Both the position numbers and the translations under genes were made by a program. A stretch of DNA of 64,000 nt from Octopus sinensis (Eukaryota). Positions within the stretch are counted from its first letter, which is position 1. Each line of letters opens with the position of its first letter. The notes under the pieces were generated by a model. It saw only the letters and a program-made list of their open reading frames with translations, had not been told where the DNA came from and did no database searches. Below, in pieces: positions 2,457 to 62,362 of this stretch. The DNA is taken from positions 68,386,001-68,450,000 of the forward strand of contig NC_043008.1 of assembly GCF_006345805.1 (NCBI RefSeq), in the 5' to 3' direction.

Positions 2457-3728
2457 CAGAGTGCAGTGAATAAATTGTCACCTAATTTACACAGAAATCA
2501 AAATAACACTGACATCTCATTTTAAGAGATATATTTACTAAAATTACTTAAAAATATCTTGAAATACTAAAGAGTAAATTTATTTAATAAAATCACGATC
2601 GGCTTCAACCATAGCCTCCGGACGACTTCGGAACCTTCTGTAACTCTGGTCTCCTTGTCTAAGTTGGTGAATGCTGCCATAATCTTTGCCTTCAGTTCAT
2701 CTTTGGTGTTACAAGGAGTTTGGTTAGTTTCTTGCTCAACTGTGCCCCACGCATAATAATCAAAGAGGTTGCAGTCTGGGGAGTTAGGTGGCAAGATGTT
2801 AGGGGTGATGTCGTCACAGAAATTGTCTGACAGCCATGACTGAGTTCTCCTTGTGTAGTATGGTGCAGAGTCCTGTTGCCAGATATAGGGTCTTCCAGCA
2901 GCCACCCTCTTGACCCAGGGCAGCACTACATCCTGCAGGCACTTGATGTAGGCCTCTGCATTGAGTGTGAGGCTGTGTGGGAAGATGAATGGAAGCATAA
3001 TGTCGCCATCATTAGTGATCACTCCAAACACCATGATGTTGACTGGATATTTGATTTTTATCACTCTTGGTACATGTTTTGGGAACATGGCAAGTCAGCG
3101 GTTGTTCTGTGTTCACCATCTGATCTTGGCAGAAACTAAAGCATGTTTGGTTGGAGGGGATGCTTGAGTTTGTTCAAAAGCTTCATAGCATGGTCTCTTC
3201 TCTTGTCCTTGATAGCTTGGGATAAAAATTGGCCCTTTCTCATCTTGTACGGGGAATAGTGAATGTCTTCATGCACTACCTGTCTGGTAAGAAACTCAGA
3301 CACTCCCATGTCCCTGGCAATGGACCTGATTGACCTGGAGGGATCATTGTCAATCATAGCCTAGATCTCACCAACTAATTCAGGAGTTCTTTTCTTATCA
3401 GACCAATCAGAGTGAGTTTTCTGAGCTGCCATACTTTTGTAGTCGCCATTAGACCTATCCAACTCTTTCCAAATCCTCTGCACTGTCCTCAGGTTGACAT
3501 CCAAACACTCTGAAATGTTCATATTGGAGCTTCTGGTGTGAATGCCAAGCAGTACAGCATGTTGTTTCCAAATTTCTGGCTGAGTGAATTGCGTCATGGT
3601 GTTGATTTTCTCACAGACGGTGCCCAACTGACCCTACTATACTGTGTAGTTGACAAAATCAAAAACAAAAAGTGCACATGCACGAAATTAAAAATATAAA
3701 ATGGCGACAATTTACCCATCGTACCCTA
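2457..3728 (-). mobile_element. Degenerate Tc1/mariner element, DD37D (maT-like) family
   Basis: Broken transposase in ORFs 3361-3627, 3136-3357 and 2567-3088 (QQDSAP...PPNSPDCNLFDYYAWG). Imperfect TIRs share taaattgtc(a/g)cc; TA flanks. Confidence 0.9.
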
Positions 3729-14000: not shown

Positions 14001-14248
14001 TGATGATTATCGTAAATGATAGATATATTTGGTTCTTGACTTTTTGATGTTCAGGGAGAAGATATGTTACTCTAGCTAAATGATATCTCAATATCTGTGA
14101 AATGGTGATAAGCTTTATTAACCTCATGAGCTTAGGGCAATAGACGTTGTAAAGATCATGTTTCTTCCAACTGTCTTTAATGGACTAAGTACTTTGGTCT
14201 TTCACTCTTTTTGACGATTTGAGAAAAAAAATTTCCATCTTTGTTCAG

Positions 14249-20902: not shown

Positions 20903-21414
20903 TAGCAGTATCGCCCGGCGTTGCTTGGGTTTGTAAGGGAAATAACTATATAAGCATTTTTAGAGAGTTACTTCCTTTATAGATGCCAATTCGGGCTTTC
21001 TTAGCCATTTCTGTTTTGGTGTCTTCAAGCCATGAAGTCGTTGTTCTAAAAGAACGCTGGTCTCCTTGACAACGCATTACGACGTTGATTTCCTTAAACT
21101 CCCTTCCCCACAGCTTCACGAGGGAGGGAAGAAGGGGGAGAAGCAAACAGGTGCAGGTGTGAGCGTGGACGCCAACTCCGCTGCCATTGACACACGAAAA
21201 ATTATGCATTAAAATGGAATAAAAAATGATGTTAAATTATTTTTTAAATCGTAGACTCATCGTAGATGCGCGCTAATAGCCAGACAGGCTCGATATGAAT
21301 TACGACTATAAGATACCCGAATTTGGTTAAACTGCACCGCAAAATGTGGGAGGAGTTAGGAATCTAAATCGTAGGAGACAGACACTCACACAACTACAGT
21401 TTTATATATATAGA
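20902..21414 (-). mobile_element. Non-autonomous Helitron
   Basis: Minus strand starts TC(tatatatataaaac) and ends with a GC-rich hairpin followed by CTAG, inserted between A and T; near-identical to 35530-36034. Confidence 0.85.
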
Positions 21415-21904
21415 TATATATACATATTACTGTATTTTCCAGCATAGAAGTTGGTGTAGTATATAGCACAAACATGTGCTGGTGCCATGTAAAAAGCACC
21501 CAGCACACACTGTAAGGTGGTTGGCATTAGGATGTGCAGCCGGCCACAGGAACCAAGCCAAATAGACTGGATCCTGGTGCAGCTCTCTGGCTTGCCAGCA
21601 TTGGTCCAACTGCCCACCTCAAGCCAACATGAAAAATGGATGTTAAATATTGATGATAATGATCATGATGATGATGTAGTGTAAACATTTGTTCATCATC
21701 TCTATCTTTTAAAATCCTGCAGCATTTCATCTCGGTGTATATGACCTATCTTTTTTGTCTGTAAATTTTGAAAAATTTGACTTGTATGCCAAAAAGTATG
21801 TTATTTTCTCTATGTACAGTGTGGTTTCTCTAAATGCAAGCTGTGACATTTTCTATACATGTTTTTCATGTTTGGCCTAATCATCTTTACTGTTTTCTTT
21901 TCAG

Positions 21905-23483: not shown

Positions 23484-26200
23484 ATTTGTACCCAAAGAAT
23501 TGTATGGATGCTAGCATACAAGTTGAAGTCAGCCTGCTGTCAGAACAGAGAATTCCACCTTCACTTGAAATGAATCCCTCCAACACAGTTAATGGTGATA
23601 AAACGCCAGAAAACACCTATTCTAACCAGTCTTCAAAGCAACTGAACAAACGGGCATTAAATAATTCTGACAAAGATACAAGAGTTACTTTGAAAGAATA
23701 CAGCTCCAAAAGATCTAAAGACAATGGTGAGAAACATCCTGAGAGTCCAGCAGCTAGTTTGGTGGCCTCACCATCTTCTCCCAGAAAACGTGGGCGGCCT
23801 CGAAAGCTAAACAACTGTTTGAACCCAAGCAATATTAAAGTTCGAAAAGTTGACTCAACCATAGAAGATTTACAAAGTCCAGGTGCTAAAACAATCAAAA
23901 GGAAAAGAGGAAGGCCAAGGAAAGAGATTAGCAATAAAGTTAATGCTTCTGAAGAAACTGTTTATGAAAAAGATCTTGATGATGCCGATGACATGACCCC
24001 AGATGCTGATAGTCACCTGTTAAATAGCAAACGCTATTCTACCCGTGGGAAGAAAATTGATTTCTCATTCCTCGTGGGAAAACCCAAGAAAAGCGAACTC
24101 TTTAAAATGAACTCTGAAAATGGTTTAAATGATTCAAGTGATGAAGACTCTCCATCTTCAGAAACAGTTGGTGCCAGTTGTTCAGACAGTGGTAAACCTG
24201 ATGAGGCTATGTTAATTGATGACAGTTCTGAAACTAATAAACTCACAAATGATGAGAGTAACACTAGTAGTAGTATTAATGATAATAATAAGAACAATGA
24301 TAATGATAAAGTAACTGTTCAAAGTGATACTGTTAGTCAGAAGAATTCTAAAGCATCTTCAACTAGTGCTAATCCTTCGAAATCAAAAGATTCTAGCAAA
24401 AAACCTAAATCCCGTGTTTTCAAGCCATTAGTAATGTCAGATGTTGCTGTATTACCTACCATCCGGGATTTATTCACTTCCAAAAAAAGGCAAAGACAGA
24501 GAAATAGGAATGATTTGAAGTCTGAATTAGCTGCAGCTGGTATAAGTGGTCGGGGACCATCATCATCCTTATCATCATCATCTACTAGTGAAGTAAATTC
24601 CAGGTATGCTGGGAACACCTTTAATCAAACTCCTAAAACTACAGAATCAAAACAGCTTTCATCTCACACTTATGACCTGCTTTGTCACTTGTGTGGCTTA
24701 CAGGATAATCAATTTGATATAATTACCGAACATTTAAGGCAAGAACACAACATAGAAAACCCATTGCGTTGTGATGTCTGTCAAAGAACTTTCGATCGAT
24801 TGTTTGACTTAAAGAGTCATCTGTCTCGTAAACATGGACCATTTCCCCAGTTAGCTATTGTTCACTGTTCTGTGTGTGGCAAAAGCTTTCAGGGTACTGC
24901 CAAACTGAATTGGCACATGAGTTTTATGCACAAAATTACTAAGGAACCCGATCCCAAAAAGACTTCTATGAAATGTAATCAATGCAGTTTTGTGGCTCCG
25001 AACTATTCTGCTTTGATTAATCACAAAGAAACTCATGTAGATGATTCTAAGTTGTGCAATTTATGTGGGAAACTCTTTTCAAAAGGGAACCATTTAATTA
25101 CTCATATTCAGGCTGTTCACACAAAAGAGAAAGCAGCTCAGTGTAAGCAGTGTGGTAAACAGTTCAATCATATACGTTACCTCCGCACTCACATGAAACG
25201 ACATGAAGGCATTAAGAAACATGAATGCAACTTATGTGGCTGGCGTTTCTTTGAAAGCAATACTCTTAAAGACCATTTAGAAACTCACAAAGACGTTAGC
25301 AAACGAAAATATCGTTTTACTTGTGACTATTGTGGTCAGAAACACATCAGTAAAGCTAATTTCAATGATCATCTTAACAAACACACCGGCAACAAACCTC
25401 ACAAATGTCAGCTGTGTGGCAAAGGGTTTGCTTTCCGCACAATGTTGATGAAACATCAGATTCATATCCACACTACAGAGAAACCATTTAAGTGTACATG
25501 TTGTGATCGAGCATTTAAATTTAAGTCGAAACTTATTCAACACATGGTCATTCATACTGGAATCAGTAAATATGTATGTCAGAACTGTAACAAACCATTT
25601 TCATGTTCAGCTACACTGAAACACCACCAACCTCGTTGTAAAGGAGATAAATCATGGCAGCAGAGCAGAACGGTTATCAGTGATGGAATGACATTAACAG
25701 TTGATGGACTTCAACTGGAACAACAGCAGGTAGAGTCTGGTGAAAACATTGCCATTCCAGTGGGGGATCAAAACGACATTGTCATCGATATGTCAAACCT
25801 ATCTGGTATCCCAGAAGGCAACATTCTGCAGGCTGCTGCACAGGCTGCTCAGCTGATGGAGATGCCAGAAGTGTTTATGTGTAGTGAGTGTAATGCTGTC
25901 TTCTCTTCTCTAGCACATGCTGAGAGCCATGTAACCACATGTCGTATTGATGTTGCTACTATCGACACACCAAACATTGAAATAAAGGTGTTAGACGACC
26001 AACAGAATACAAGCTTTGTTGAAACAGCAATTTCTGTTGATAATACCTCCACCATTGCTGTTGATAATTCCACCACAATTGCTGTTGATAATTCTGCCGC
26101 AATTGCTGTTGATAATTCCTCCACGATTGCTGTTGATAATTCCTCCACGATTGCTGTTGATAATTCTTCCACAATTGCCATTGATAATTCCTCCAACTGA
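23484..26200 (+). CDS. Zinc-finger gene terminal exon: AT-hooks, 10 C2H2 + 2 C2HC fingers, octapeptide tail
   Basis: Poly-T tract + cAG acceptor, phase 1; long ORF (provided 23486-26200). Two RGRPRK AT-hooks; CxxC-x12-H-x3/4-H fingers with TGNKP and TTEKP linkers; ends TGA at 26198-26200. Confidence 0.95.
26030..26197 (+). repeat. Coding 24-bp tandem repeat x7 (consensus peptide IAVDNSST)
   Basis: Seven consecutive attgctgttgataattcctccacN-like units directly before the stop codon. Confidence 0.95.
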
Positions 26201-26229
26201 TCACATGTCAGTGGGGCATTATATTATTG

Positions 26230-28154: not shown

Positions 28155-28959
28155 TCATACTTTAACATTCATTTTCCATGCTTGCATGGGTTGGACCTAT
28201 ATATATTCCAACTTATTCAATTATATACATATATATTCAAATAAGTATATAATCGAATAAGTTGAAGTGAACAAGAAGGAGTACAGTTGGACATTTGTTT
28301 GTAATCACTACAAATGTTTCCACACTATGTAATTCTCCAAGTTTGCAGTTATTTGGTTATGTAATCTTTTCCTTGAATTATGGGATCTAGTTGTGTTTCC
28401 TCAAGTGAAGTATAAATATTGAATCAGTAAATTCAAATTCTCGGCTTCAAGTACATCCTTTCTGTCTGTTGTGGCCTGTGGGTTAGTAGTAGCCACTGAG
28501 TTCGTTTAACGTCTGCTTTCCATGCTAGCGTATCATGAAATGTGTCATGGCTGAAACTCTGTTGATAAACTGCTTGGAATGTATCTATGGAGTTTGGGTG
28601 GTGGTCATGATGCTGGGGTTCTTGTTAAAGTGAGTGGCATTCGATTTCTTTGTACGGTTGAGTTATTCTTCATGGTTGGTTACATTTCCAATTGCCCTTG
28701 GCTGACCTTCAAGAATTCACTGGTCAATCTGTTGACATCATTTTGTATATATCTACATTTATATACAGCTATACGTACACATGTATGCTCACACACACAC
28801 ATTTACATACTATATGTATATATAGATACATGTACACACATGTATATACTTAGACATGCATATTAATATATGTACCCATACATACATGTACACACATATA
28901 TATATATGTAAATACACTCATCCATACATACATATACATGCACCCAGACATGCATATAA

Positions 28960-30900
28960 TCATCATTTAATGTCCATTTTCCATGCTGACATAGGTTGGA
29001 TAGTTTGACCAAAGGCTGATAAGCTGGGGAGCTGCAGCAGATTCTGATCTGATTTGGCAAGGTTTCTACGGACGGATGCCCTTCCCAACGCCAACCACTG
29101 CAAGAGTGTATTGGGTATTTTTTACGTACCACTGGCACAGGTGCCATTGACTTGACACCAACATCGACACAACTATGGTCTCACTTGGCTTGACAGGTCT
29201 ATACAAGCACAGTATATTGCCAAAGGTCTCGGTCACCTGTCACTGCCTCTGTTAGGTCCAACACTCAAACAGTGCTTTTTACATGCCACTGGCACAGGTG
29301 CCAGTCACACAGCACTGGCATTGGCTACAACTACGATCTCACTTGGCTTGACAGGTCTTCTCAATCATGGCATAACGTCAAAGGTCTCAGTCACTTGACA
29401 TTGCCTCTGTGAGCCCCAACATTCAGAGATCACACTTCACCACCTTGTCCCATGTCTTCCTGGGTCTACCTCTTCCACACTGTTAGAGTATGACACTTCT
29501 TCACACAGCTGGCCTCGTCAATATGCATCACATGACCATACCAGTGCAGTTATCTCTCTTGCACACCACATCTGGTGCTTCTTATGCTTACACTCTTTTG
29601 TGCGTGCACACTGACATTATACATCCAGCAAAACATATCAGCTTCATTTCTTACAAGCCTATGCATATCCTTGGCAGTCGCAGCCCATGTTCCATTACTG
29701 TGTAGCATGGCTGTTCACACACAGGCATCATACAATCTGCCTTTCACTCTGAGTGAGAAACCCTTTGTTACCAGTAGAGGTAGGAGCTCTCTGAACTTTG
29801 CCCTGCCTATTTGTATTCTAGCAGCTACGCTCTAGGAGCATCCACCCCAACTACTGACTTGGTCACCTAGGCAATGGAAGCTGTCAACTACTTCTCCCCA
29901 ACTCCCTGGCACGTGACAGGATCTGTTTTCTATACATTTTAGTGTTAATTGTACCTGTGCACCTTCCACACACAAAAACTATTTTCCTTGTTAACCTTCC
30001 CCTTATATTGCTGCACCTCTTATGTGTCCATAGCTTACACCATGTACATCTTATGGTGTTTCTACCTACACCTTTTCTGCAGATCATGCAGGGCCATCTA
30101 CCTGAAGGAATTTGTGATTTGTCTGCTTTCCTACTTACTAACACTTTAGTTTTTGCTAGGTTTACTCAAAGGCACTTCTATTCTAGACCTTGCTTCCATA
30201 CCTGAAACTTCTCACTCTAGTTCTTGTAGTGATTCAGCTATAAGAGCAAGGTCATCAGCATAGAGGGGCTCCCAAGGGTAGCCTGCCTTAAATTCCTTTG
30301 TTATTACCTAGAGGACTATGATGAACAAGAGGGGGCTGAGGACTGATCTTTGGTGAACCCCTACTTGTAGCATGCATTCTTACACTATACTCATTGCCAA
30401 CCCTCACCTTACTGACAGCATTCCTATACATGGCTTGTACTGCTCTCACCAACCACTCATCTATCCCTAGTTTCCGCATTGACCACCAGATAAGGGATTG
30501 GGGGACCCTGTCAAAGGCTTTCTCCATGTCAACAAAATCCCAATACAGAGGTTTATCTTTGGCTAGGTATTTCTTCTGCAGCTGTCTTACCAGAAATATA
30601 GCATCAGTGGTGCTTCTCTCTGACACAAAACCAAACTGCCTCTCATCTAACTTTCTCCCTAATTAGTTGGGCTTTGACCCTCTCTGTAACTGTCATCACC
30701 TGATCCAACAATTTGATACCTTTGTAATTATTTCTATCTAAGGCATCACCTTTACCTTTGTAGCAGTTGACTATGGTGCTGCTACACCAGTCATTGGATA
30801 TGACACCTTCATGCACCACCTAGTTAACAATGCGGGTGACTAGAGCAAAGCCTGCACTGCCAGATATTTTAAGCATCTCAATGGTGATTCCTGATGGGCC
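28960..30900 (-). mobile_element. 5'-truncated RTE-clade LINE fragment (RT remnant, Cys-rich motif, 3' tail)
   Basis: ORF remnants STTDAIFLVRQLQKKYLAKDKPLYWDFVDMEKAFDRVP (reverse transcriptase) and WPCMICRKGVGRNTIRCTWCKLWTHKRC; runs into a (GAT)n tail near 28960. Confidence 0.9.
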
Positions 30901-31164: not shown

Positions 31165-31350
31165 ACACAGAGTTTACAGAGGCAATATTTATATATCACC
31201 TGAGGAAACACAACTAAATCCCATAGCGCAAGGAAAGGGTTACCTAACCAAATACCTGCAAATCTGGAGTACTATGTTGCATGGAAACAATTGTAGTGAT
31301 TACAAATAAATGTCCAACTGTACTCCTTTTTGTTGGCTCCAACTTATTCA
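31165..31350 (+). mobile_element. About 190-bp Penelope-like repeat with hammerhead-like motif; inverted copy at about 28243-28430
   Basis: atcac-CTGAGGA...GAAA-CAATTG-TA-gtgat then AATAAA. A diverged reverse-complement copy lies 2.8 kb upstream. Confidence 0.5.
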
Positions 31351-31774
31351 ATTATCTGTTCACACATAACAGAAGCCATAACACAAATCTAGCAGTATGT
31401 ATAATACTACTAGTGGATAACACCAGATGAAATCTGAAGGTGGACAAGCTTTATACTGTACTGCACTATGTTCTTAACAGAATATAACATAACTACACAC
31501 ACACAGTGATGCTGGACTGGCTCCTGTGCAGGTGGCATGTAAAAAACACCATTTGACATGGCCATTGCTAGTACTGCCTGACTGGCCCTCATGCCGGTGG
31601 CACATAAACACTCACTACACTCTCGGAGTGGTTGGTGCTAGAAAGGGCATCCAGCTGTAGAAACTTTGCCAGATCAGATTGGAGCCTGGTGCAGCCATCT
31701 GGTTCGCCAGTCCTCAATCAAATCATTCAACCCATGATAGCATGGAAAGCGGACATTAAACAATGATGATGATG

Positions 31775-35121: not shown

Positions 35122-35518
35122 CTAGCAGTGTCGCCCGGCGTTGCTCGGGTTTGTAAGGGAAATAACTATATAAGCATTTTTAGAGAGTTATAGCCAAAAA
35201 ATAGCAAAAAAATGCATTAAAAATGGGAAAAAAATGATGGTAAATTTTTTTTAAATCGTTGACTCATCGTAGACATTTTTAGAGAGTTACTTCCCTTATA
35301 TAATAGCGAAAAAATGCATTAAAATGGAAAAAAATGATGGTAAATTTTTTTTAAAATTGTAAACTCATCGTAGATGTGCGGTAATATCCAGAAGGGCTCG
35401 ATATGAATCACGACTATAAGATACCCGGTTTTGGTTAAACTGCACCGCAAAATGTGGGAGTAGTTAGGAATCTAAATCGTAGGAGACAGACACACAACTT
35501 CACTTTTATATATAAAGA
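35122..35518 (-). mobile_element. Non-autonomous Helitron variant with internal duplication
   Basis: Same termini as 20902-21414; lacks the central segment and carries an approximately 100-bp internal duplication. Confidence 0.8.
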
Positions 35519-35529
35519 TATATATAATA

Positions 35530-36034
35530 CTAGCAGTATCGCCCGGCGTTGCTCGGGTTTGTAAGGGAAATAACTATATAAGCATTTTTAGAGAGTTACT
35601 TCCCTTATAAATTCGGGCTTTCTTAGCCATTTTTATTTGGTGTCTTCAAGCCATGAAGTCGTTGTTCTAAAAGAACGCTGGTTTCCTTCACAACGCATTA
35701 CGACGTTGATTTCTTTACACTCCCTTCCCCACAGCTTCACGAGGGAGGGAAGGGGGAGAAGCAAACAGGTGCAGCTGTGAGCGTGGGCGCCAACTCCGCC
35801 GCCATCGACATACGATGCATTTTATGCATTAAAATGGAATAAAAAATTATGTTAAATTATTTTTAAACTCGTAGACTCATCGTTGACGCGCGCTAATAGT
35901 CAGACGGGCTCGATATGAATCACGACTATAAGATACCCGAATTTGGTTAAACTGCACCGCAAAATGTGGGAGGAGTTAGGAATCTAAATCGAAGGGGACA
36001 GACACTCACACAACTAGAGTTTTATATATATAGA
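35530..36034 (-). mobile_element. Non-autonomous Helitron
   Basis: TC...hairpin-CTAG termini; sits in tandem 11 bp from the previous copy. Confidence 0.85.
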
Positions 36035-36138
36035 TATATATATAACATATATAATATAACCAATTTCAACAGATTTTGCCCAAATTTGACGTCAATATTA
36101 CTTAATTTGGTTTGAAATAAAGAACTTGATTAGCTTAA

Positions 36139-39959: not shown

Positions 39960-41400
39960 ATGATATTTGTGTTAAATGTTGCGAGCCAATACCTGCAGCA
40001 TAGACATGAACAGTATTAAAATTCCAGAGGTCCAATGTCTCGAGGGCGGGGGAAAAATGCGTATTTGTGATGAGCGCTGGGTTTGGACGTAGCAAGGACA
40101 ATGAGAAGTAGAGAAGTGAATGGATCAAGGGTACCCGAAAGAAGGAGGTATGGGATGAGTTGCTGTTTTCACATTTTGGTACATAGGTAGTAGTTCTATA
40201 AATGGGTGTTAATCGATACATCGACTCTTGACTGGTATTCTATTTTACCGACTCCTGTAGGATGAAAGGCATAATTAACCCCCAGCAGAATTTGAACTCA
40301 GAATGCAATAAGTCGGAAGAAATATCTCGAAGTATTTTATTTGATGCTCTGACTATTCGGTCTACTCACCATCTCTATGAAAAGGAATGAAATATAAACT
40401 GTTTAAAAAAGTGAAAATGGACCGCTAAAGTCAATGATCGTCGCTACATTTTTTATCAAAACACTGCCTATGTGCACCAAATATATATTCTCCCGAGCTA
40501 GGACAGATGAAAGTTGATCGTAAGTTGGACTTAGATACAGGATGTAGTAAGACGAAAATATACAACACAAAGAATATTGTTAAATGCCTTTATCAATTTA
40601 ATGACTATAACAACTACGATTTTTAGGAACTAGGCGTAACTGTAATTACTTCCCTTTAGTAGAATTCTTTTGTAGAAGAGTTTTAAAAATTTCCCATTAT
40701 TAGAGAAGCTATGGCGGAAAATACTAATGGAACCAAAACAGAAATGACGACAGAATCGTCAAACGAAGTGGAAGACATCGGTGTATACACGCAGGTAAAA
40801 AGACTAAGTTTATATATTAATATACTGCATTAATATTTGGGAATTTAGTGGTCATCTGGTTTGTATTAGTTAAAATTTTATATGAAGACCAATGTTTCGA
40901 CGTCTGTAGGGTTTTTGGCGTCAACGTTTACAGTTATCAAACCAGCAACATAAATTTGTTATATTGATTATAGGAGGATGAGAGGAAAACAGATTGTGTG
41001 GAGTTCATGCCTTCCTGGGAGACGCTAGTAATCGGTTCCTAATAAAATGGCTATAACTGAGAATGGAAATCAGACACGTACTCTAGTCCCACCACGCTGT
41101 ATAATTTTTAACACGCAGATACATATTTTGGAATATCTAAATAAATGCGATGTTGTGACGTTCATGTTGTGTCTTTCGTGAGGTAGTGGTGAGTAATAGA
41201 CGTGAAATTAAAATAGCTATGAGCATGAATTGAAATTATGTTTACTCGGCTGTGGTTAATGTATTATGTAACTACAGGCGTTATATATATATATATATAT
41301 TAGAAGCAGTGAGATGTTGTGATATTAATTCTTTTCATAAGGCTTTTACCATTGTATGCAAAATGAAATGTTCGCAGCTGTGAAGCGATACCAGGTTACA
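39960..41400. promoter_or_regulatory. CpG-retaining promoter/first-exon region of EXOSC10
   Basis: By eye, CG dinucleotides are visibly denser than in flanking DNA, around the ATG at 40711, and the region is largely free of old SINEs. Not quantified. Confidence 0.5.
40711..40794 (+). CDS. EXOSC10: EXOSC10/Rrp6 exon 1
   Basis: gaagctATGG start in a CpG-retaining region, donor GTaaaa, phase 0; MAENTNGTKTEMTTESSNEVEDIGVYTQ. Joins in frame to exon 2. Sequence similarity here is weak, so the call rests on position and phase. Confidence 0.7.
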
Positions 41401-43290
41401 GAATCATCCTGGAGTCTAGCAGCTGCTTGTTACTTTATGGATGCTGGAGCAATGTAATGTTGAGGCATTCATCAGTTTTCTCAAGGTAGTTATAGTACAA
41501 TTGTGAAGGCAAGATTTTATGTATATCTTTACATATATATATAAGCGAAAGCTTGACAAAAAAGAAAAAAAAAACAAAGAGAGGAAAAAATATTGATATC
41601 TTTGAACTGCGTAAATAACTCGAAAATTAATATTAGAAATCCCCTGACCTTCTCCACCCCCAAATAACGAGGTATATTGTTATAGTTACCTTGTATATTT
41701 TTTATGAATTTCCTACCAAAGATATACAAGGAATGGATTTGATTAAACTTTTGAAGAAACAACAGGTCAGTCTTCATCTAACTGGACTATGATCAAAGAC
41801 GTTTCATTTATGACCACCCTGCCATTTATTTATTTAGACATAGTTTACTAAACTAGTAGTCCACTACTAAAAGCCCATTTTATTGCATCAGTTTTCTTGT
41901 AGACCCAAAGGTTTTGAAAGATCTGTTTACAGATTTTGAACTCGGTTCACTAATCTCCAGTTATATCTTTGCAGAATCCCAGGTTGGGATTTCTGCTGAT
42001 TTAGACAATAGTATCCAATGTGTTTTACTTTAAGATGGTAAGATGTGGTTTGAAGAAGATTTGGTCACATATGCTTAGTGTGTGTGTGTAAGATTTGGTT
42101 ACATATGCTTAGTGTGTATGTGTATATATGTATATATATATAAGCAAAGTAGCTATGTATATATACTGGGTGCAGATTGCATCAATAACCAGCTGGAGGA
42201 GGCTCTTCCTGGGGTTAAAAAAGGTAGTAGCATTGAACAGCCATATTGATGTAGCAATAAACATTACTTATATGTATGTATATGTGAATTTAACGTACAC
42301 TTTTTCATGCTTGTATGAGTCAGATGGAATTTGTTATGGTCAAATTTTTTACAGTCAGATGCTCTTTCTGTCACTAACCCTCACCTATTTCCCAGCAAAG
42401 TTATAGTTCCTCATAGCTATACATATTTTCATAGAAGACTGGAAATGGACAACCTCCCTTGTATGACAATGATATTCACTTACAACCATCAGATGATGAC
42501 TAGACAAGGGTACACAGACACGTGTGCATACACACACACACGACTAGCTTCTTTCAGTCTGTCTACCAAATCCACTCAAGGCTTTGGTGAACTTGGGGTT
42601 GTATAAGTAGAAGACACTCAGCTGCTGCACATTGGGACTGAACCCCAAGACCACATGGTTGGAAAGCAATCATGTTGTCCTGGGGTTCACGTATGGACTG
42701 ATCAATGTCTTGTGAATGAATTTCATAGACAGAAAATGTGTGGAAGCTCATTGTTTATATATAAATACATGTGATATGTGTGTGTGCCTTTATGTTTGCC
42801 TACCATTCAGAAACTGGTGTAGGTTTGTTTATGATCCTGTGAGTAGTTTAGCAAAAGAGATCAATAGAAGATGTAACAGACTTGAAAAGAGTACTGGGGT
42901 TGATTTATTTGGCTAAATCCATCAAGCTGGTGCCCCATCATAGCCACAATCCAGTGACTGAAACAATGACAGTGGCAAAAGAATGTGTGTCTGTATGTCT
43001 GTATGGTAAAAGATGACTAAAAGGATTAGTATCCGGAAGGGCATGGCCTCAAAAAATCCCATCCAACCCCCACAACATGGCAGAATGGATATCTGCAGAT
43101 ATGGTTGTTTGGTAAGAAGTTTGCTTTCCAACCACATTCTTTTGGGTTCTGTCCCACTCTGTGGCACTTAAGGCAAGTGTCTTCTACTATAACCCTTAGC
43201 TGACCAAAGCTTTGTGAATAGATTAGGTAGACAGAAACTGAAAGAAGCCCATTTTATATATATATATATATTCACTTTATTACTTTATTA

Positions 43291-43419
43291 AAAAGAAGCA
43301 AAAATATCACAAAAACTGTTATTCTGAATTTCACGTTCCCATTTGTTGGACAACAAAACTCTGACGAATGAGAATGTGAAACTCTGAGTAACAGTTTTTG
43401 TGATATTTTTGCTGCTTTT
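43291..43419. repeat. Palindromic element (about 45-bp imperfect arms)
   Basis: agcaaaaatatcacaaaaactgtta... / ...taacagtttttgtgatatttttgct. Confidence 0.8.
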
Positions 43420-43496
43420 CAATATAGCATATTACTCTATCTCTGGTATTTAAGTACTATTTTTTCCACCTTGTTTTGCATTTATGTGCTTACTCT

Positions 43497-43533
<37 letters not shown>

Positions 43534-43556
43534 ATGATGACACATACATATATATG

Positions 43557-43608
<52 letters not shown>

Positions 43609-44439
43609 GCCATTGCAGGTGTCATGTAAATGGCACCCGTGCTGGTGGCACATAAAAAACACCCATTATACTCTTGGAGTGGTCGGTGTTAAGAAGGGCA
43701 TCCAGGTATAGAAACTAAGCCAAATCAAATTGGAATCTGGTGCAGTTCCAGTCAAACTGTCTAATGCATGCCAGCATGGAAACTGGACATTAAATAATGA
43801 TGGTGATAGAGATCTTGTGGTGGTCTGCCCTTGGACAGGTACTGTGTATATGAACCTTCTCCACCACTTTCTGTACGACCTGAGAGGGCCTGTGTCCCCC
43901 TCTTCCACCTTTAAGTAAATTACTATAACTTTGGTTACCATGAGCAATCTTGGGGTGAATACTGAAGTGGTTCCCTGTTGCCTTCTCCAGGCAAGTGAGA
44001 TTTGAACTCTGAATGTAAAAAGCTGGAAGATATACTGTAAAGCGTCTCTACCTATGTGTCAACAATTCTGCCACTCCCCACCCGCAGAGCAACATGAAAT
44101 GAAGTGTTTTGCTCAAGAACACAATTTGCTACCCAGTCGGGGAACTGAACCCATGATCTAGCAATCATGAGTGCAGTACCTTAACCACTCATCCATGCAC
44201 CTTATATATTCTTTTATTCTTTTAGTCATTTTGACTGTAGCTATGCTGGAGCACTGCCTTAAAGGGTTTTAGTTGAAGAAATTGACCCCAGGACTTATTC
44301 TTTTTAAACCTAGTACTTATTCTATCAGTCCCTTCTGCCAAGCTGCTAAGTTACAGGGACATAACCACACCAGCATTGGTTGTCAAGTGATGGTGGTGGG
44401 GACAGGGGAAGGAAAAACAGACACTCACACATAAATATA

Positions 44440-44502
<63 letters not shown>

Positions 44503-44505
<3 letters not shown>

Positions 44506-44830
44506 GTGAAATAGAAAGATGAATAATCTTGTAGTAGATTAATCAAAAGTTTAACCGATACCTTAGTAGCAAAAATCACAGCAGTGAACAGCACGGTTGG
44601 AGGTACAACCATCTGGCGTTGCAACCGTGCGTTGGTGCGGATAATTGAAATTTTTGCTCTGCCTCTGTTCTGTTTTTGTTTTTCCAACGGATTTCCTTTT
44701 TTCTTCCTGAAGAGAAAGACACAATATGGTCCCATTATTCAATCGGATTTTGGTAATTTGTGCCTTTCGAAACACGTGTAGAATGAAATAAAACGATTTC
44801 TGTTCAATCTGCGTTCAGCTCCATTTCTTC
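44503..44830 (+). mobile_element. Probable Penelope-like terminal repeat (pLTR) or retrozyme-like insert carrying the hammerhead
   Basis: CpG-rich 330-bp block between (TA)n tracts with the hammerhead followed directly by AATAAA, a layout known for Penelope-like element termini. Confidence 0.5.
44701..44788 (+). ncRNA. Minimal type I hammerhead ribozyme motif, intact core
   Basis: CTGAAGA 44707-44713; 11-bp stem II with one mismatch (44714-44724/44758-44768, G10.1-C11.1); GAAA 44769-44772; palindrome ACACGTGT 44772-44779; GUA cleavage triplet ending 44780; stem I ttc/gaa extendable past a bulge. Confidence 0.75.
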
Positions 44831-44846
44831 AACTCACCAATAATGT

Positions 44847-44879
<33 letters not shown>

Positions 44880-46870
44880 ATACAGGACTGGCTTTTCTCA
44901 GTTTCCATTTATCAAATCCACTCACAAGGCTTTGGTTGACCTGAGGTTACAGTAGAAAACATTTGCCCAAGGTGCCACACAGTGGCACTGAATTCAGAAC
45001 CTTGTGGATGGGAAGCAAGCTTCTTACTACACAGCCATGCCTGCGCCTATATGTATGTATGTATGTGTCTCCTTGTTTTGACATCGCATTTAGTGTCATT
45101 CATTTACAAAATACTGTGAGAACATATCTGGTTAAGGGGAAATATAACTTTGGAAAAAGGTGAATGTTGGCAACAGGAAATGCATCCATCTGTAGAACAT
45201 CTACCATCTCCCACTGTGTTCATTGCTCTCTCACCTCTCACTCATCCTACTCCTCTATCAGAGTACCTCCCTATTAGGACTTTATCTCTTTCCCATCATG
45301 GCACTTGTGTAACAAGAAATGGCAATGTGTTGGGGCTCTGTATTGAGTTTCTCTTACAATCATCTATTGTCTTTGCTTACTATCACCCTTTTCTCTCTCA
45401 TTACTCACTACATATTGATAATAATGTTGCATTACCCCCATTCTATCACCCATTTTCCTGCTATCCATTAATATTTCTCACATTACTCCATCCTTCACTC
45501 TCCTTCTCTCTCCCATTATGCTCTTCATCTTCCAGTATTTCTATCACTCTCTCTTCTCTACTATCATATCAATCTTTCTGTTTCTATCCAATCTCCTAGC
45601 TGACAGCCATTATGTAGGAGTATATCACTTTCTCTTCCATTACACTCCTCTCTATGATGTTTCTATCCAATCTCATTAGCAACAGTTGTCATGCATCTTG
45701 TCATTCCCTCGCTCTCTTTTCTGTTATTCTCTCTTCTTGTTTTGGTCCTCTTGTGTAGAAAAGAAAAAGGACAAATGGAGATAACACAGAGCAGTGAAGA
45801 GGCAGCTCTCTTTAGTCTTACCTTTCTGGTACTGGTCAATGAACAAACAGAGACAACATAGAGAGGATTCTTTATTCTTGCTAGGGACATGACAATCTAT
45901 CTTGTGCTGGAACCACAATAGCATGCACACAAAACACTCTGTAAAATGGTTGGCAATATTGAGAGCATCTAAGGTGGCGTGGCCTTGTGCCATAATTTGA
46001 AAGCAATATTGAGGGCATCCATCCTTAGAAACAATTTCAAAAGTGGCAACTGTGAATAAGACATGGTTTCATAATGTATGTGAGGGTAGTTACAATGGAT
46101 AAGAACTGACAAAAACTGTGGGAAACCACTTCAATTTTGTTGATTTCGAACCTGAGACCACCTTTAAAGCTGGTAATTTAGTACCTGGAAGATTTGATAT
46201 CTTTAATCTCATCATCGTCATCATTGTCATAACACCCATTTTTCCTAGCTTGCATGGGTCAGATGGAGTTTATTGAGGCAGATTATCTATGGCTGGATGC
46301 TCTTTCAGTCACCAATCCTCACTTGTGTCCAAGCAAGGCAATATTTCCTCATGGCCAGACATTATTTACAGAAATCTCATAATGTCAAAACAAGGAGACA
46401 AATATACACACACTCACACACATATACATACATACATCATCATCATCATTTAATGTCCATTTTTCATGCTAGTAGGGGTTAGATGATTTGACCAGAGCTG
46501 GCAAGCTGGAGAATTGGACCAGACCCCAGTCTGATTTAGCTTGGTTTCTATGGTTGGGTGCCCTCATATATATATATATATGTAAGAGACCTTTGCCCAA
46601 GGTACCACACTAAGACTAAACTTGAAACCATGTAGTTGCAAAGAACGCTTCTTACCTACACAGCTACACCTGCACCTAGATTAATGTAGATATAATTAAG
46701 GAGTATCCATTAGTCCAATCACAGTAATTACACACACAAAACATAAAAGGTAATAAAGTCTTCTTATACTGTGTATTGAGTACTACAAATAATTGTCTGT
46801 TATATTATTATGCAACAGTAAGTAGTGGAAGCTGAATTGTAATTTCCTGTTTCTGTTTCATTTTTTGTAG

Positions 46871-47007
46871 AAAGTTCTCCAGACTGTTCTTCAATGTGTG
46901 AAATCATCAAATGCACTGCCTGCTGAGGGAGATGACTATGACTTCTATTCCAGTTTTCCAGGTTTCCAAGAAATCATGGAAATTGAAGGCAAACGTATAC
47001 TACATAT
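46871..47007 (+). CDS. EXOSC10: EXOSC10 exon 2 (PMC2NT domain)
   Basis: ttttttgtAG / GTgagc; KVLQTVLQCVKSSNALPAEGDDYDFYSSFPGFQEIMEIEGKRILH matches the conserved Rrp6 DYDFYxSFPGF motif. Confidence 0.95.
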
Positions 47008-55145: not shown

Positions 55146-55250
55146 GGAAATTTATTAGATGAAGCTTCAGGCATTAAAAAACAAGAAAATACACTTGTTA
55201 TTACCAACTTTAAACCAAAGCAGACCAATATTGCAAGCTGGAATAAAAAG
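55146..55250 (+). CDS. EXOSC10: EXOSC10 exon 4
   Basis: ttgttttccAG / GTatta; GNLLDEASGIKKQENTLVITNFKPKQTNIASWNKK (conserved GxxLDEASG...SWN). Confidence 0.95.
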
Positions 55251-56087
55251 GTATTATATATAATAATCATATCATTATTCTGACAAAATATGTTTTGTTG
55301 AACTAATGATTTGGGCTTAAATATTTTATTCATTCTCAGAGTTCTTTATTCTAAGTGGTTGGACTTAGCTTCTTTTGAACTTGTCACTCTCTGAAATAAA
55401 TAAATAGATAAATAAATAAATACATGGGTGCTTTTATGTGCCACCAGCATGGGTGCCAATCCTGGTGTCATGTAAAAGCACCCATTACACACCTAAGTAG
55501 TTGGCATTAATAAGGACATCCAGCTGTAGAATCCATGTCAAATCAGACTGGAACCTGGTGCAGCTCTCTGGTTCATCAGCTCTAGTCAAACCATCTAACC
55601 CATGCCAGCATAGAGAGTGGACATTAAATGATGATGATGATACACTATTTGTTTCAACCCATCATGTACTGGTAGCTTGGAGATAAGATGCTGTACAAAT
55701 ATTTGTGGTGTATCACATGTGCAGACATGGCTCCCCAGGTGATTTCTATGCCATTTCCCTTGTTTACATATCAATACATTTTTGTACTTGTGATGTACTC
55801 ATCATCTACATAAGGAATTCTTGAAGTTAATGCAGTGGAATATACCTCCAGACTGTTGTTGACAGGTAGCTGAATATTGTGAACAAGCTTTAAACGGCAT
55901 ACTGCAAAGTGTATACCTGAATGTAAAATTATATAGGCGCAGGCATGGGTGTGTGGTAAGAAGCTTGCTTTCCACCAACATGGTTTCAGATTCAGTCCCA
56001 CTGTGGCGTCTTGGGCGTCTTCTACTATAGCCTCAGGCCAACCAAAGCTTTGTGTGTGGACTTGGTAGATGGAAACTGAAAGAAGTT

Positions 56088-57511: not shown

Positions 57512-57674
57512 CAGAGTCCAGCCAATACGCCTGCAGCTCCTAACAACTATAGATTGATTACAGGACGTCAACTTGTGAGACCACAAACTAAATTTACAGA
57601 TGACATTGATAATTCCAACAGTTCATTTGTCCCACGAATCCGAAGAAAGCCCAATGCTCTGAAATCACTTGAAG
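57512..57674 (+). CDS. EXOSC10: EXOSC10 exon 5
   Basis: cttcctccAG(cag) / GTcagt, phase 0 to 1; ...RLITGRQLVRPQTKFTDDIDNSNSSFVPRIRRKPNALKSLE (conserved RPQxKF..IDNS..F.P.I..KPNA). Confidence 0.95.
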
Positions 57675-60086: not shown

Positions 60087-60110
60087 ATTTGAAACTGACT
60101 TATTGGAAGT

Positions 60111-60153
60111 CCACCTGAAGATTGTCGATCAAGACAAGAAACAATTGTAGTGG
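60111..60153 (+). ncRNA. Minimal type I hammerhead ribozyme motif, intact invariant core
   Basis: Stem I ccac/gtgg; CTGAAGA 60115-60121; stem II ttgtc/gacaa; GAAA 60138-60141; palindrome ACAATTGT 60141-60148; GUA triplet ending 60149. Confidence 0.65.
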
Positions 60154-60237
60154 TTTTTTTGACTATTTATTAAAATTTTATGTATTGATTAAGTCTTTCC
60201 TTGTTTGTTTTGCAAAATAGTGGTTTTGTCTCTAATA

Positions 60238-60295
<58 letters not shown>

Positions 60296-61621: not shown

Positions 61622-61697
61622 CTACCCACATCCGTACGCTTATGAACTGGAGCATTGGAAAGCAATGGACCATCAATTACAGAAATCCGAGGCAAAG
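61622..61697 (+). CDS. EXOSC10: EXOSC10 exon 7 (gene continues beyond the window)
   Basis: ctgtgtttcAG / GTaatg, phase 2 to 0; (S)YPHPYAYELEHWKAMDHQLQKSEAK (conserved HPYxYEL motif preceding the DEDD exonuclease domain). Confidence 0.95.
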
Positions 61698-62362
61698 GTA
61701 ATGGAAATATATTCTTCTGTAATGGCACCAACAATAACCTTCCATTCCTTATACTTTACCTCCATTATTATCATCATCATCATCAACAACACCCCTTTTC
61801 TCTGATTCTTGTTTTAGATGAATATATTATTGAGGCATTTTTTTGCTGCTGGAAACTCTGCTCTCTTTTTTTCACACTACTTTGAAGGCACAAAGCCAGC
61901 AGATGAATCTTTGTCTGCTTTCCATGCTAGGGGAAATAACATCAGTGCTCACAACTCAGTGATTTTTGGAGAAGTGTAAATGTAAGCAAGCACACACAGT
62001 TCCATAGCCTTTTAACTATGGGATCTGGTGTGGCCCCTAGCCTTGCCAGCCCCTGTCAAGCCGTCCAACTCATACCAATATGGAAAAGAGACATTAAAGG
62101 ATGATGACAATGATATAACAAGTTTCTTTCAGTTTCTATCCAGTTTTATCAGACCAGAAAAACACATTCGTCCAAGATGATGATCAGTGGGACTGAACCT
62201 GGAAACTAGAAATCATGTGGTTGAGCAGTAAACTTGTTAACCATACAGCCATGTGTGCATCTGTGGATTAGATTTTTAACTTATTGTAAACACTATCTGA
62301 GTTATTGGGAATAATAAACTTGGTGTCTAATGCGCGCTCGCACTTGTGTATATATATATATA

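Follow-up and report, generated by a model that had tools for sequence, protein, structure and literature searches.

Is the hammerhead-like motif in Octopus sinensis EXOSC10, which encodes the nuclear exosome nuclease, a working part of the pre-mRNA, a passenger brought in by a mobile element, or an accident of an AT-rich intron? The motif was pointed out in a sequence-only reading of 64 kb of genomic DNA (the whole stretch analysed, hereafter the window), in which it was also proposed that cleavage of the transcript might feed back on EXOSC10 expression. The analysis presented below shows that the hammerhead motif is genuine and above chance expectation. The reading that we hold to be probable, with some room left for others, is that of a young minimal hammerhead ribozyme (min-HHR) of the type found in Penelope-like elements (PLEs), which came with a truncated PLE or a PLE-mobilised unit into a (TA)n microsatellite and is a passenger in an EXOSC10 intron. 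The features concerned are listed in Table 1.

Table 1 Features of the hammerhead, its host insert and the surrounding EXOSC10 locus (window positions)
Feature	Position	Strand	Basis or remark
Core box CUGAAGA (C3 U4 G5 A6 A7 G8 A9)	44707-44713	+	Sequence, descriptor, Rfam alignment
Helix II	44714-44768	+	Arms 44714-44724 / 44758-44768; 33-nt loop 44725-44757
Core box GAAA (G12 A13 A14 A15.1)	44769-44772	+	Sequence, Rfam alignment
Helix III, perfect 8-nt palindrome ACACGUGU	44772-44779	+	Sequence
A17, predicted scissile bond 44780/44781	44780	+	Position read from sequence
Helix I, 5' strand	44699-44706	+	3 bp, mismatch at 44703, then 4 bp
Helix I, 3' strand	44781-44788	+	Pairing list
AATAAA	44787-44792	+	Sequence; 7 nt downstream of cleavage site
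Unique insert bearing the hammerhead, ~344 nt	44503-44846	+	Splits SINE-like repeat
Left (TA)n microsatellite flank, target site	44449-44502	.	Internal (TA)n of SINE-like repeat
Right (TA)n microsatellite flank	44847-44872	.	Sequence; comparison with repeat copies
One half of interrupted SINE-like repeat	44200-44448	.	77-82% identity to at least 6 other copies in window
Other half of interrupted SINE-like repeat	44873-45064	.	Comparison with repeat copies
Favoured candidate for coding exon 1 of EXOSC10	40711-40794	+	ATG ... CAG/gtaaaa, phase-0 donor; putative
EXOSC10 exon 2, start of PMC2NT domain	46871-47003	+	Acceptor ttttgtag/AAAGTT; tblastn E=2e-8
Second, compact min-HHR	60111-60153 (descriptor match 60115-60149)	+	Descriptor, centroid fold

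A complete type I hammerhead core can be read directly from the sequence at 44707-44780 of the forward strand. All of the invariant positions (C3-A9, G12 A13 A14, the A15.1-U16.1 pair and H17) are present within 44707-44713 and 44769-44780. Helix II has ten base pairs and one A.C mismatch over its 11 positions and rests on the pair of G10.1 (44714) with C11.1 (44768), the G following directly upon A9. In a monomer, helix III amounts to only 2 bp capped by an ACGU tetraloop, while 8 bp can form between two copies. Helix I is weak and AU-rich: its inner part (44704-44706 / 44781-44783) consists of C-G, U-A and U-A, and past the mismatch the outer part (44699-44702 / 44785-44788) contains G-U and A-U pairs only. 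Base-for-base inspection bears out what had first been described, namely the intact core, the G44714-C44768 pair, the 11-bp stem II with one mismatch, the self-complementary stem III, the predicted cleavage after A44780 and the downstream AATAAA. The last of these is on its own not special, since the sense strand of the presumed intron 1 contains five AATAAA and four ATTAAA sequences.

The assignment of a minimal type I hammerhead with a palindromic stem III to the PLEs, made in the sequence-only reading, also corresponds to the published architecture (PMC4209133). Metazoan PLE min-HHRs are located in pLTRs and combine exact core boxes with a helix II enlarged to 6-8 bp, a short helix I and the G10.1-C11.1 pair; positions 15.2-16.2 and loop 3 form a palindrome, and an unpaired nucleotide is found between A9 and 10.1 (PMC4209133). 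The candidate resembles the PLE min-HHRs (Cervera & De la Pena 2014) in its type I topology, exact boxes, G10.1-C11.1 pair and long helix II, as well as in having a short and weak helix I, no loop-loop motifs and a palindromic helix III of 1-2 bp, which implies a dimer. It differs from the published min-HHR consensus families in the loop of helix II, which is 33 nt long instead of small, and from PLE min-HHRs in lacking the extra, unpaired nucleotide between A9 and 10.1 and in being known here without a linked pLTR or ORF.

The hammerhead lies in a stretch of unique sequence that interrupts a SINE-like repeat. In the SINE-like copies at 56357-55931, 7129-6739 and 4152-3746 the two halves are contiguous via a short (TA)n, and these copies represent paralogous empty sites. 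As the halves are joined in the other copies, about 344 nt (44503-44846) must have been inserted into the (TA)n, leaving TA repeats on both sides. The insert contains 12 CpGs and has a CpG observed/expected ratio (o/e) of 0.99, within the top 1% of 350-nt windows, as compared with 0.29 for the whole window and 0.0 (44200-44448) and 0.11 (44873-45064) for the two SINE halves. Because the immediate flanks are depleted of CpG, the insert is most simply taken to be much younger than the sequence around it; together with the empty sites, this agrees with the CpG-rich, young host block that had been suggested. The end of the hammerhead is about 65-66 nt away from the 3' junction of the insert.

Insertions of this kind are well known for PLEs, which show heavy 5' truncation, hammerheads near their 3' ends and a strong bias toward (TA)n (Craig et al. 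2021, PMC8557442). In the Hydra clade, which has Mollusca among its host phyla, canonical hammerheads are universal and (TA)n is the insertion site of almost all families; microsatellites are targeted by Neptune and Naiad PLEs as well (PMC8557442). Like the insertions of Hydra, Neptune and Naiad PLEs, the candidate insert is found in (TA)n without a discernible target-site duplication and carries its ribozyme near the 3' end. It can be read, as PLE insertions are, as strongly 5'-truncated, and a second insert in the window (see below) has the same layout. Unlike the (TA)n-targeting PLEs, it has no partial tandem or inverted companion copy: neither terminal inverted repeats nor a tandem or partial tandem were present in 44495-44850, and a 14-mer repeated at a spacing of 277 nt in the insert is not significant as a partial tandem. 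Most of the PLE min-HHRs in genomes are likewise dispersed single motifs that derive from truncated PLEs (PMC4209133). From these likenesses we infer that the insert is of PLE parentage. Its carrier would have been either the 3' end of a 5'-truncated PLE or a non-autonomous, retrozyme-like unit mobilised by a PLE; some 344 nt of it would recently have integrated into the (TA)n of an older SINE-like repeat, in sense orientation and most probably within intron 1 of EXOSC10.

Retrozymes offer the closest comparison for the second type of carrier. The non-LTR retrozymes of animals are derivatives of PLE pLTRs with consensus lengths of 51-972 bp, and their monomers are scattered and depleted from introns (bioRxiv 10.64898/2026.07.22.740005). 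The candidate insert would share with retrozymes (PMC7229834; bioRxiv 10.64898/2026.07.22.740005) the type I hammerhead, a low GC content, a unit of 150-450 bp, an ancestry in PLE pLTRs and the occurrence as scattered monomers. In contrast to the head-to-tail repeats of retrozymes that yield circRNAs (PMC7229834), it is a single unit with one ribozyme, and no circle can therefore be excised from it.

The alternative that survives best is another TA-targeting element, such as a Helitron, a Tc1/mariner-type MITE or an unknown SINE, with a hammerhead-like motif that has nothing to do with PLEs. Helitrons and Tc1/mariner elements, too, typically integrate at TA or AT sites, and this speaks for such an origin. 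A remnant of a Tc1/mariner-like transposase is present in the window at 2567-3088, and such remnants would fit an origin of this type. It is also favoured by the lack of linked PLE coding sequence: Pfam searches of the insert ORFs for the C-terminus of a PLE ORF detected no domain, and no PLE RT/GIY-YIG coding sequence was adjacent to the insert or among the window ORFs of at least 90 aa. Against it stand the features of the insert: terminal inverted repeats are lacking, neither end has a Helitron terminus (5'-TC ... CTRR-3' or a 3' hairpin), and there is neither a tail of poly(A) or simple repeats nor a head resembling a tRNA or a SINE. Moreover, as metazoan carriers of minimal type I hammerheads whose helix III is palindromic, only PLEs and their retrozyme derivatives have been described (PMC4209133, PMC7229834, bioRxiv 10.64898/2026.07.22.740005). 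This alternative is accordingly considered improbable, and the PLE-derived insert is retained. Further copies of the insert were absent from the 64-kb window (blastn, word size 7), and two scans of metagenome contigs, with a gapped hammerhead pattern and with a CpG-free 21-mer from helix II, gave 0 matches each.

The position of the insert relative to EXOSC10 was derived from the exons of this gene. Exons on the forward strand were located with tblastn at 46874-47005, ~49.9 kb, 55146-55253, 57533-57670 and 61623-61700; the query was a human EXOSC10 sequence, used for exon location only. Independently of this probe, the joined translations of exons 2-4 gave a Pfam PMC2NT match of 80 bits, and a homologous protein search with the joined exon translations had no match at E<=1e-10. 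The exon at 46.9 kb cannot be the first, as its splice acceptor directly follows an in-frame stop. Coding exon 1 was predicted ab initio, and the donor of its best candidate has a PWM score of 7.0, eighth of the 15 ATG-ORF/donor candidates in 26.2-46.9 kb; this exon was chosen for its location in a unique CpG-rich block (o/e 1.2). The C-terminal residues of its product (MAENTNG...GVYTQ/gtaaaa) extend the N-terminal EXOSC10 alignment. Intron 1 would thus probably extend over 40795-46870 and carry the hammerhead on the sense strand. Of the placement made in the sequence-only reading, the sense orientation with respect to EXOSC10 was confirmed by the PMC2NT match, and the assignment to intron 1 is probable.

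The window holds a second, compact min-HHR, CCAC-CUGAAGA-UUGUC-GAUCAA-GACAA-GAAA-CAAUUGU-A-GUGG, which lies, like the first, on the sense strand of EXOSC10, in an intron farther downstream. Helices I and II are both present in its centroid fold. It is part of a unique insert of 157 nt (60087-60243), bordered by (TA)n runs, with 95 nt to the 3' junction. Both motifs follow a common design, CUGAAGA and GAAACA-palindrome-UGUA, and helix I of the second motif has 4 bp. The 34 nt that follow the cleavage site of the second motif recur at the 3' end of its insert (p ~0.005), a pattern that resembles the partial tandem, or short 'tail', of PLE insertions.

An older pair of repeats at 31170-31355 (+) and 28249-28434 (-), which are 86% identical, carries CTGAGGA, then after 75 nt GAAACAATTGTA/GTGAT, followed by AAATAAA. 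One of the copies has lost C3 and the palindrome, helix II of the pair is poor, and the repeats are possibly a decayed relative. Outside the core boxes, no significant similarity was detected between the candidate insert, the second insert and the el3/el4 repeat; el3 and the second insert have only an 18-nt 3' half in common.

It had further been proposed that the hammerhead could cleave the EXOSC10 pre-mRNA after A44780, leaving ends for the exosome and Xrn2 to process and giving a possible feedback on the expression of the gene. The intact core in sense orientation in a probable intron 1, and the presence of another sense min-HHR in the same gene, would be in line with this. There is also a precedent in the conserved intronic type I hammerheads of amniotes, for instance in RECK and CTCL (PMC6155905). 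The candidate resembles the amniote ribozymes (RECK, CTCL, DTNB; HH9/HH10; PMC6155905), which are thought to derive from ribozymes of retroelements (PMC6155905), in being of type I and in sense orientation in an intron of a protein-coding gene. The amniote hammerheads are ultraconserved, with canonical helices, loop-loop contacts and efficient cleavage as monomers, whereas the candidate is minimal and, to judge from its CpGs, a recent arrival, and its geometry rules out canonical contacts between loops I and II; it gave no match to the Rfam models HH9 and HH10. The sense orientation of both motifs (2/2) is not significant, and a young insert with undecayed CpGs needs no selection to have an intact core.

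The predicted structure of the RNA also argues against activity. A fold with all three helices and an open helix I is compatible with the sequence but is not the MFE structure: constrained to the hammerhead, the RNA folds at -12.2 kcal/mol as against -17.2 kcal/mol for the MFE, and is thus 5 kcal/mol less stable. In the MFE structure helix II is present and the core boxes are paired elsewhere. With its helix II loop set 11 bp off the core and with an AU-rich helix I, the motif cannot make the loop-loop contacts to which natural hammerheads owe their speed at cellular Mg2+ (PMC6155905). Cofolding of a homodimer did produce the 8-bp intermolecular helix III, beyond the 2 bp of the monomer. A second GAAACACGTGTH site was absent from the 64 kb, so this solo copy has no partner for a dimer in cis. 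For single PLE min-HHRs cleavage was undetectable in vitro, and dimers and trimers were weakly active, mostly at non-physiological Mg2+ (PMC4209133). Activity on the EXOSC10 pre-mRNA is therefore regarded as very improbable, and the proposed regulatory feedback has no support.

In the life cycle of the element, according to the literature, two copies would pair via the palindromic helix III and then cut tandem or multimeric transcripts, a role that this copy may have had by analogy; at the EXOSC10 locus, a solo copy without stabilising tertiary contacts would be a passenger. Most likely, it is inert or at best a very inefficient passenger of the EXOSC10 pre-mRNA, and its intact core is explained most simply by the young age of the insert and not by selection or a host function. 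One could imagine that the two sense min-HHRs of the pre-mRNA cleave a fraction of the nascent transcripts, with the aid of host chaperones or by pairing in trans, as the palindromes ACACGUGU and ACAAUUGU are near-complementary and match at 6/8 positions. We give this idea hardly any credence. If it were true, ribozyme-triggered decay would act on the very gene that encodes the nuclear exosome nuclease, and a retroelement ribozyme would have been co-opted in a young, lineage-specific manner.

Chance occurrence was assessed with a descriptor applied to both strands. It demanded exact CUGANGA and GAAA boxes, H17, and a minimum of 4 bp in helix II (spacer up to 80 nt), 2 bp in helix III and 3 bp in helix I. 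In dinucleotide-shuffled 64-kb windows, 0.034 matches are expected on both strands; the P value is somewhat flattering for the candidate, as the descriptor was composed after this motif had been seen; the second match is an independent find. The real window gave 2 matches, the candidate and 60115-60149 (+), both with a palindromic helix III, and a match with a perfectly palindromic helix III occurred in 0/3000 shuffles. When one core mismatch was allowed, a single extra match appeared at 14211, within the chance expectation of 0.43 per window.

The comparison with hammerhead models, which the sequence-only reading had proposed as a check, was of little help by itself. No hammerhead was reported by Rfam at the gathering score over the whole 64-kb window, nor at E<=10 over 900 nt. 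In a search of 181 nt, RF00163 (Hammerhead_1) aligned in its full length (model positions 1-45) with 44701-44786, at 14.8 bits and E=0.68, far below the gathering score of 34. The alignment includes the palindromic helix III consensus ACGCGCGU; relative to RF00163 the candidate has a 51-nt insertion in helix II and a weak helix I. The compact second motif (60115) had no Hammerhead_1 match at all, and as such a clean motif is missed, the Rfam models are insensitive to minimal hammerheads. Folded alone, the helix II segment has -14.7 kcal/mol and z = -2.17, with 7/200 shuffles folding equally well; the MFE of the whole motif has a z-score of -0.27.

That an AT-rich intron came by accident to combine 11 fixed core nucleotides with complementarity for three helices is very unlikely: minimal descriptors do give many false positives (PMC6155905), 0.034 per 64 kb would mean roughly a thousand matches per Gb-sized genome, and both the Rfam score and the whole-motif z-score are unremarkable, but the palindromic helix III that was never met in the shuffles occurs twice in the window, both matches fall into small unique (TA)n-bounded inserts that together make up <1% of it, helix II by itself is more stable than expected, and the G10.1-C11.1 pair and the palindrome, typical of PLE hammerheads (PMC4209133), are not demanded by the descriptor.

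In conclusion, the hammerhead in EXOSC10 is one more among the thousands of minimal hammerheads that retroelements are known to have brought into invertebrate genomes. Greater importance would attach to it only if the EXOSC10 pre-mRNA were indeed cleaved, and nothing here points that way. It is nevertheless a clean case: the insertion is dated and delimited by paralogous empty sites, by its (TA)n target and by CpGs that have not decayed, and a second independent example is present in the same window. It is also of use as a positive case from a class missed by Rfam at gathering scores, and it suggests that hammerhead-bearing, (TA)n-targeting PLEs or their non-autonomous derivatives have recently been active in this genome.

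A second minimal hammerhead ribozyme, compact and clean, was found on the EXOSC10 sense strand, in the intron that separates the exon at 57533-57670 from that at 61623-61700 (see table). Its sequence reads CCAC/CUGAAGA/UUGUC-GAUCAA-GACAA/GAAA/CAAUUGU/A/GUGG, and the 157-nt insert carrying it is unique in the window and has a (TA)n run on each side. The 34 nt 3' of the predicted cleavage site are repeated at the 3' end of the insert (60218-60246; p ~0.005). Rfam gave no match to this compact hammerhead.

Further features of the window
Feature	Position	Strand	Remarks
Second minimal hammerhead, core	60115-60149	+	compact, clean; within insert 60087-60243
Long ORF, multi-C2H2 zinc-finger protein	23486-26200	+	~900 aa; Pfam zf-C2H2, zf-H2C2_2
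86%-identical repeat, inverted pair	31170-31355; 28249-28434	+; -	hammerhead-like halves
AATAAA/ATTAAA hexamers	44787-44792; 60169-60174; 31307-31313		one per hammerhead-bearing element
221-nt repeat family	21202-21422; 35310-35530; 35822-36042

Upstream of EXOSC10 and on the same strand lies the zinc-finger ORF, which finishes with tandem copies of a 24-nt (8-aa) unit (26003-26218). The proposed exon 1 of EXOSC10 (40711-40794) is surrounded by a CpG-rich block at 40150-41400, with a CpG observed/expected ratio (o/e) of 0.9-1.25, that is unique in the window and is likely the unmethylated promoter region. The highest CpG o/e of the window (~1.5) was found in the 35-36 kb region. The 221-nt family, of which the first and third copies are 95% identical, looks like another young repeat. 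Judged by eye, a 173-aa ORF at 2567-3088 (-) is similar to the C-terminal DDE portion of transposases of the Tc1/mariner type.

In the inverted repeat pair, the hammerhead-like halves consist of CTGAGGA and, after ~75 nt, GAAACAATTGTA/GTGAT, followed by AAATAAA. Pairing in helix II is poor, and this helix has undergone CpG decay; in the minus-strand copy, C3 is changed to T and the palindrome is broken. The pair and the 60-kb insert may be related, with the pair as the old and decayed member. A LINE-type RT fragment (30288-30626, -) is located between its arms.

In all three hammerhead-bearing elements, namely this pair and the inserts at 44503-44846 and 60087-60243, AATAAA or ATTAAA occurs 7-21 nt 3' of the predicted cleavage site. 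The surrounding sequence is AT-rich, and the hexamer may be a feature of the pLTRs of Penelope-like elements that the three have in common.
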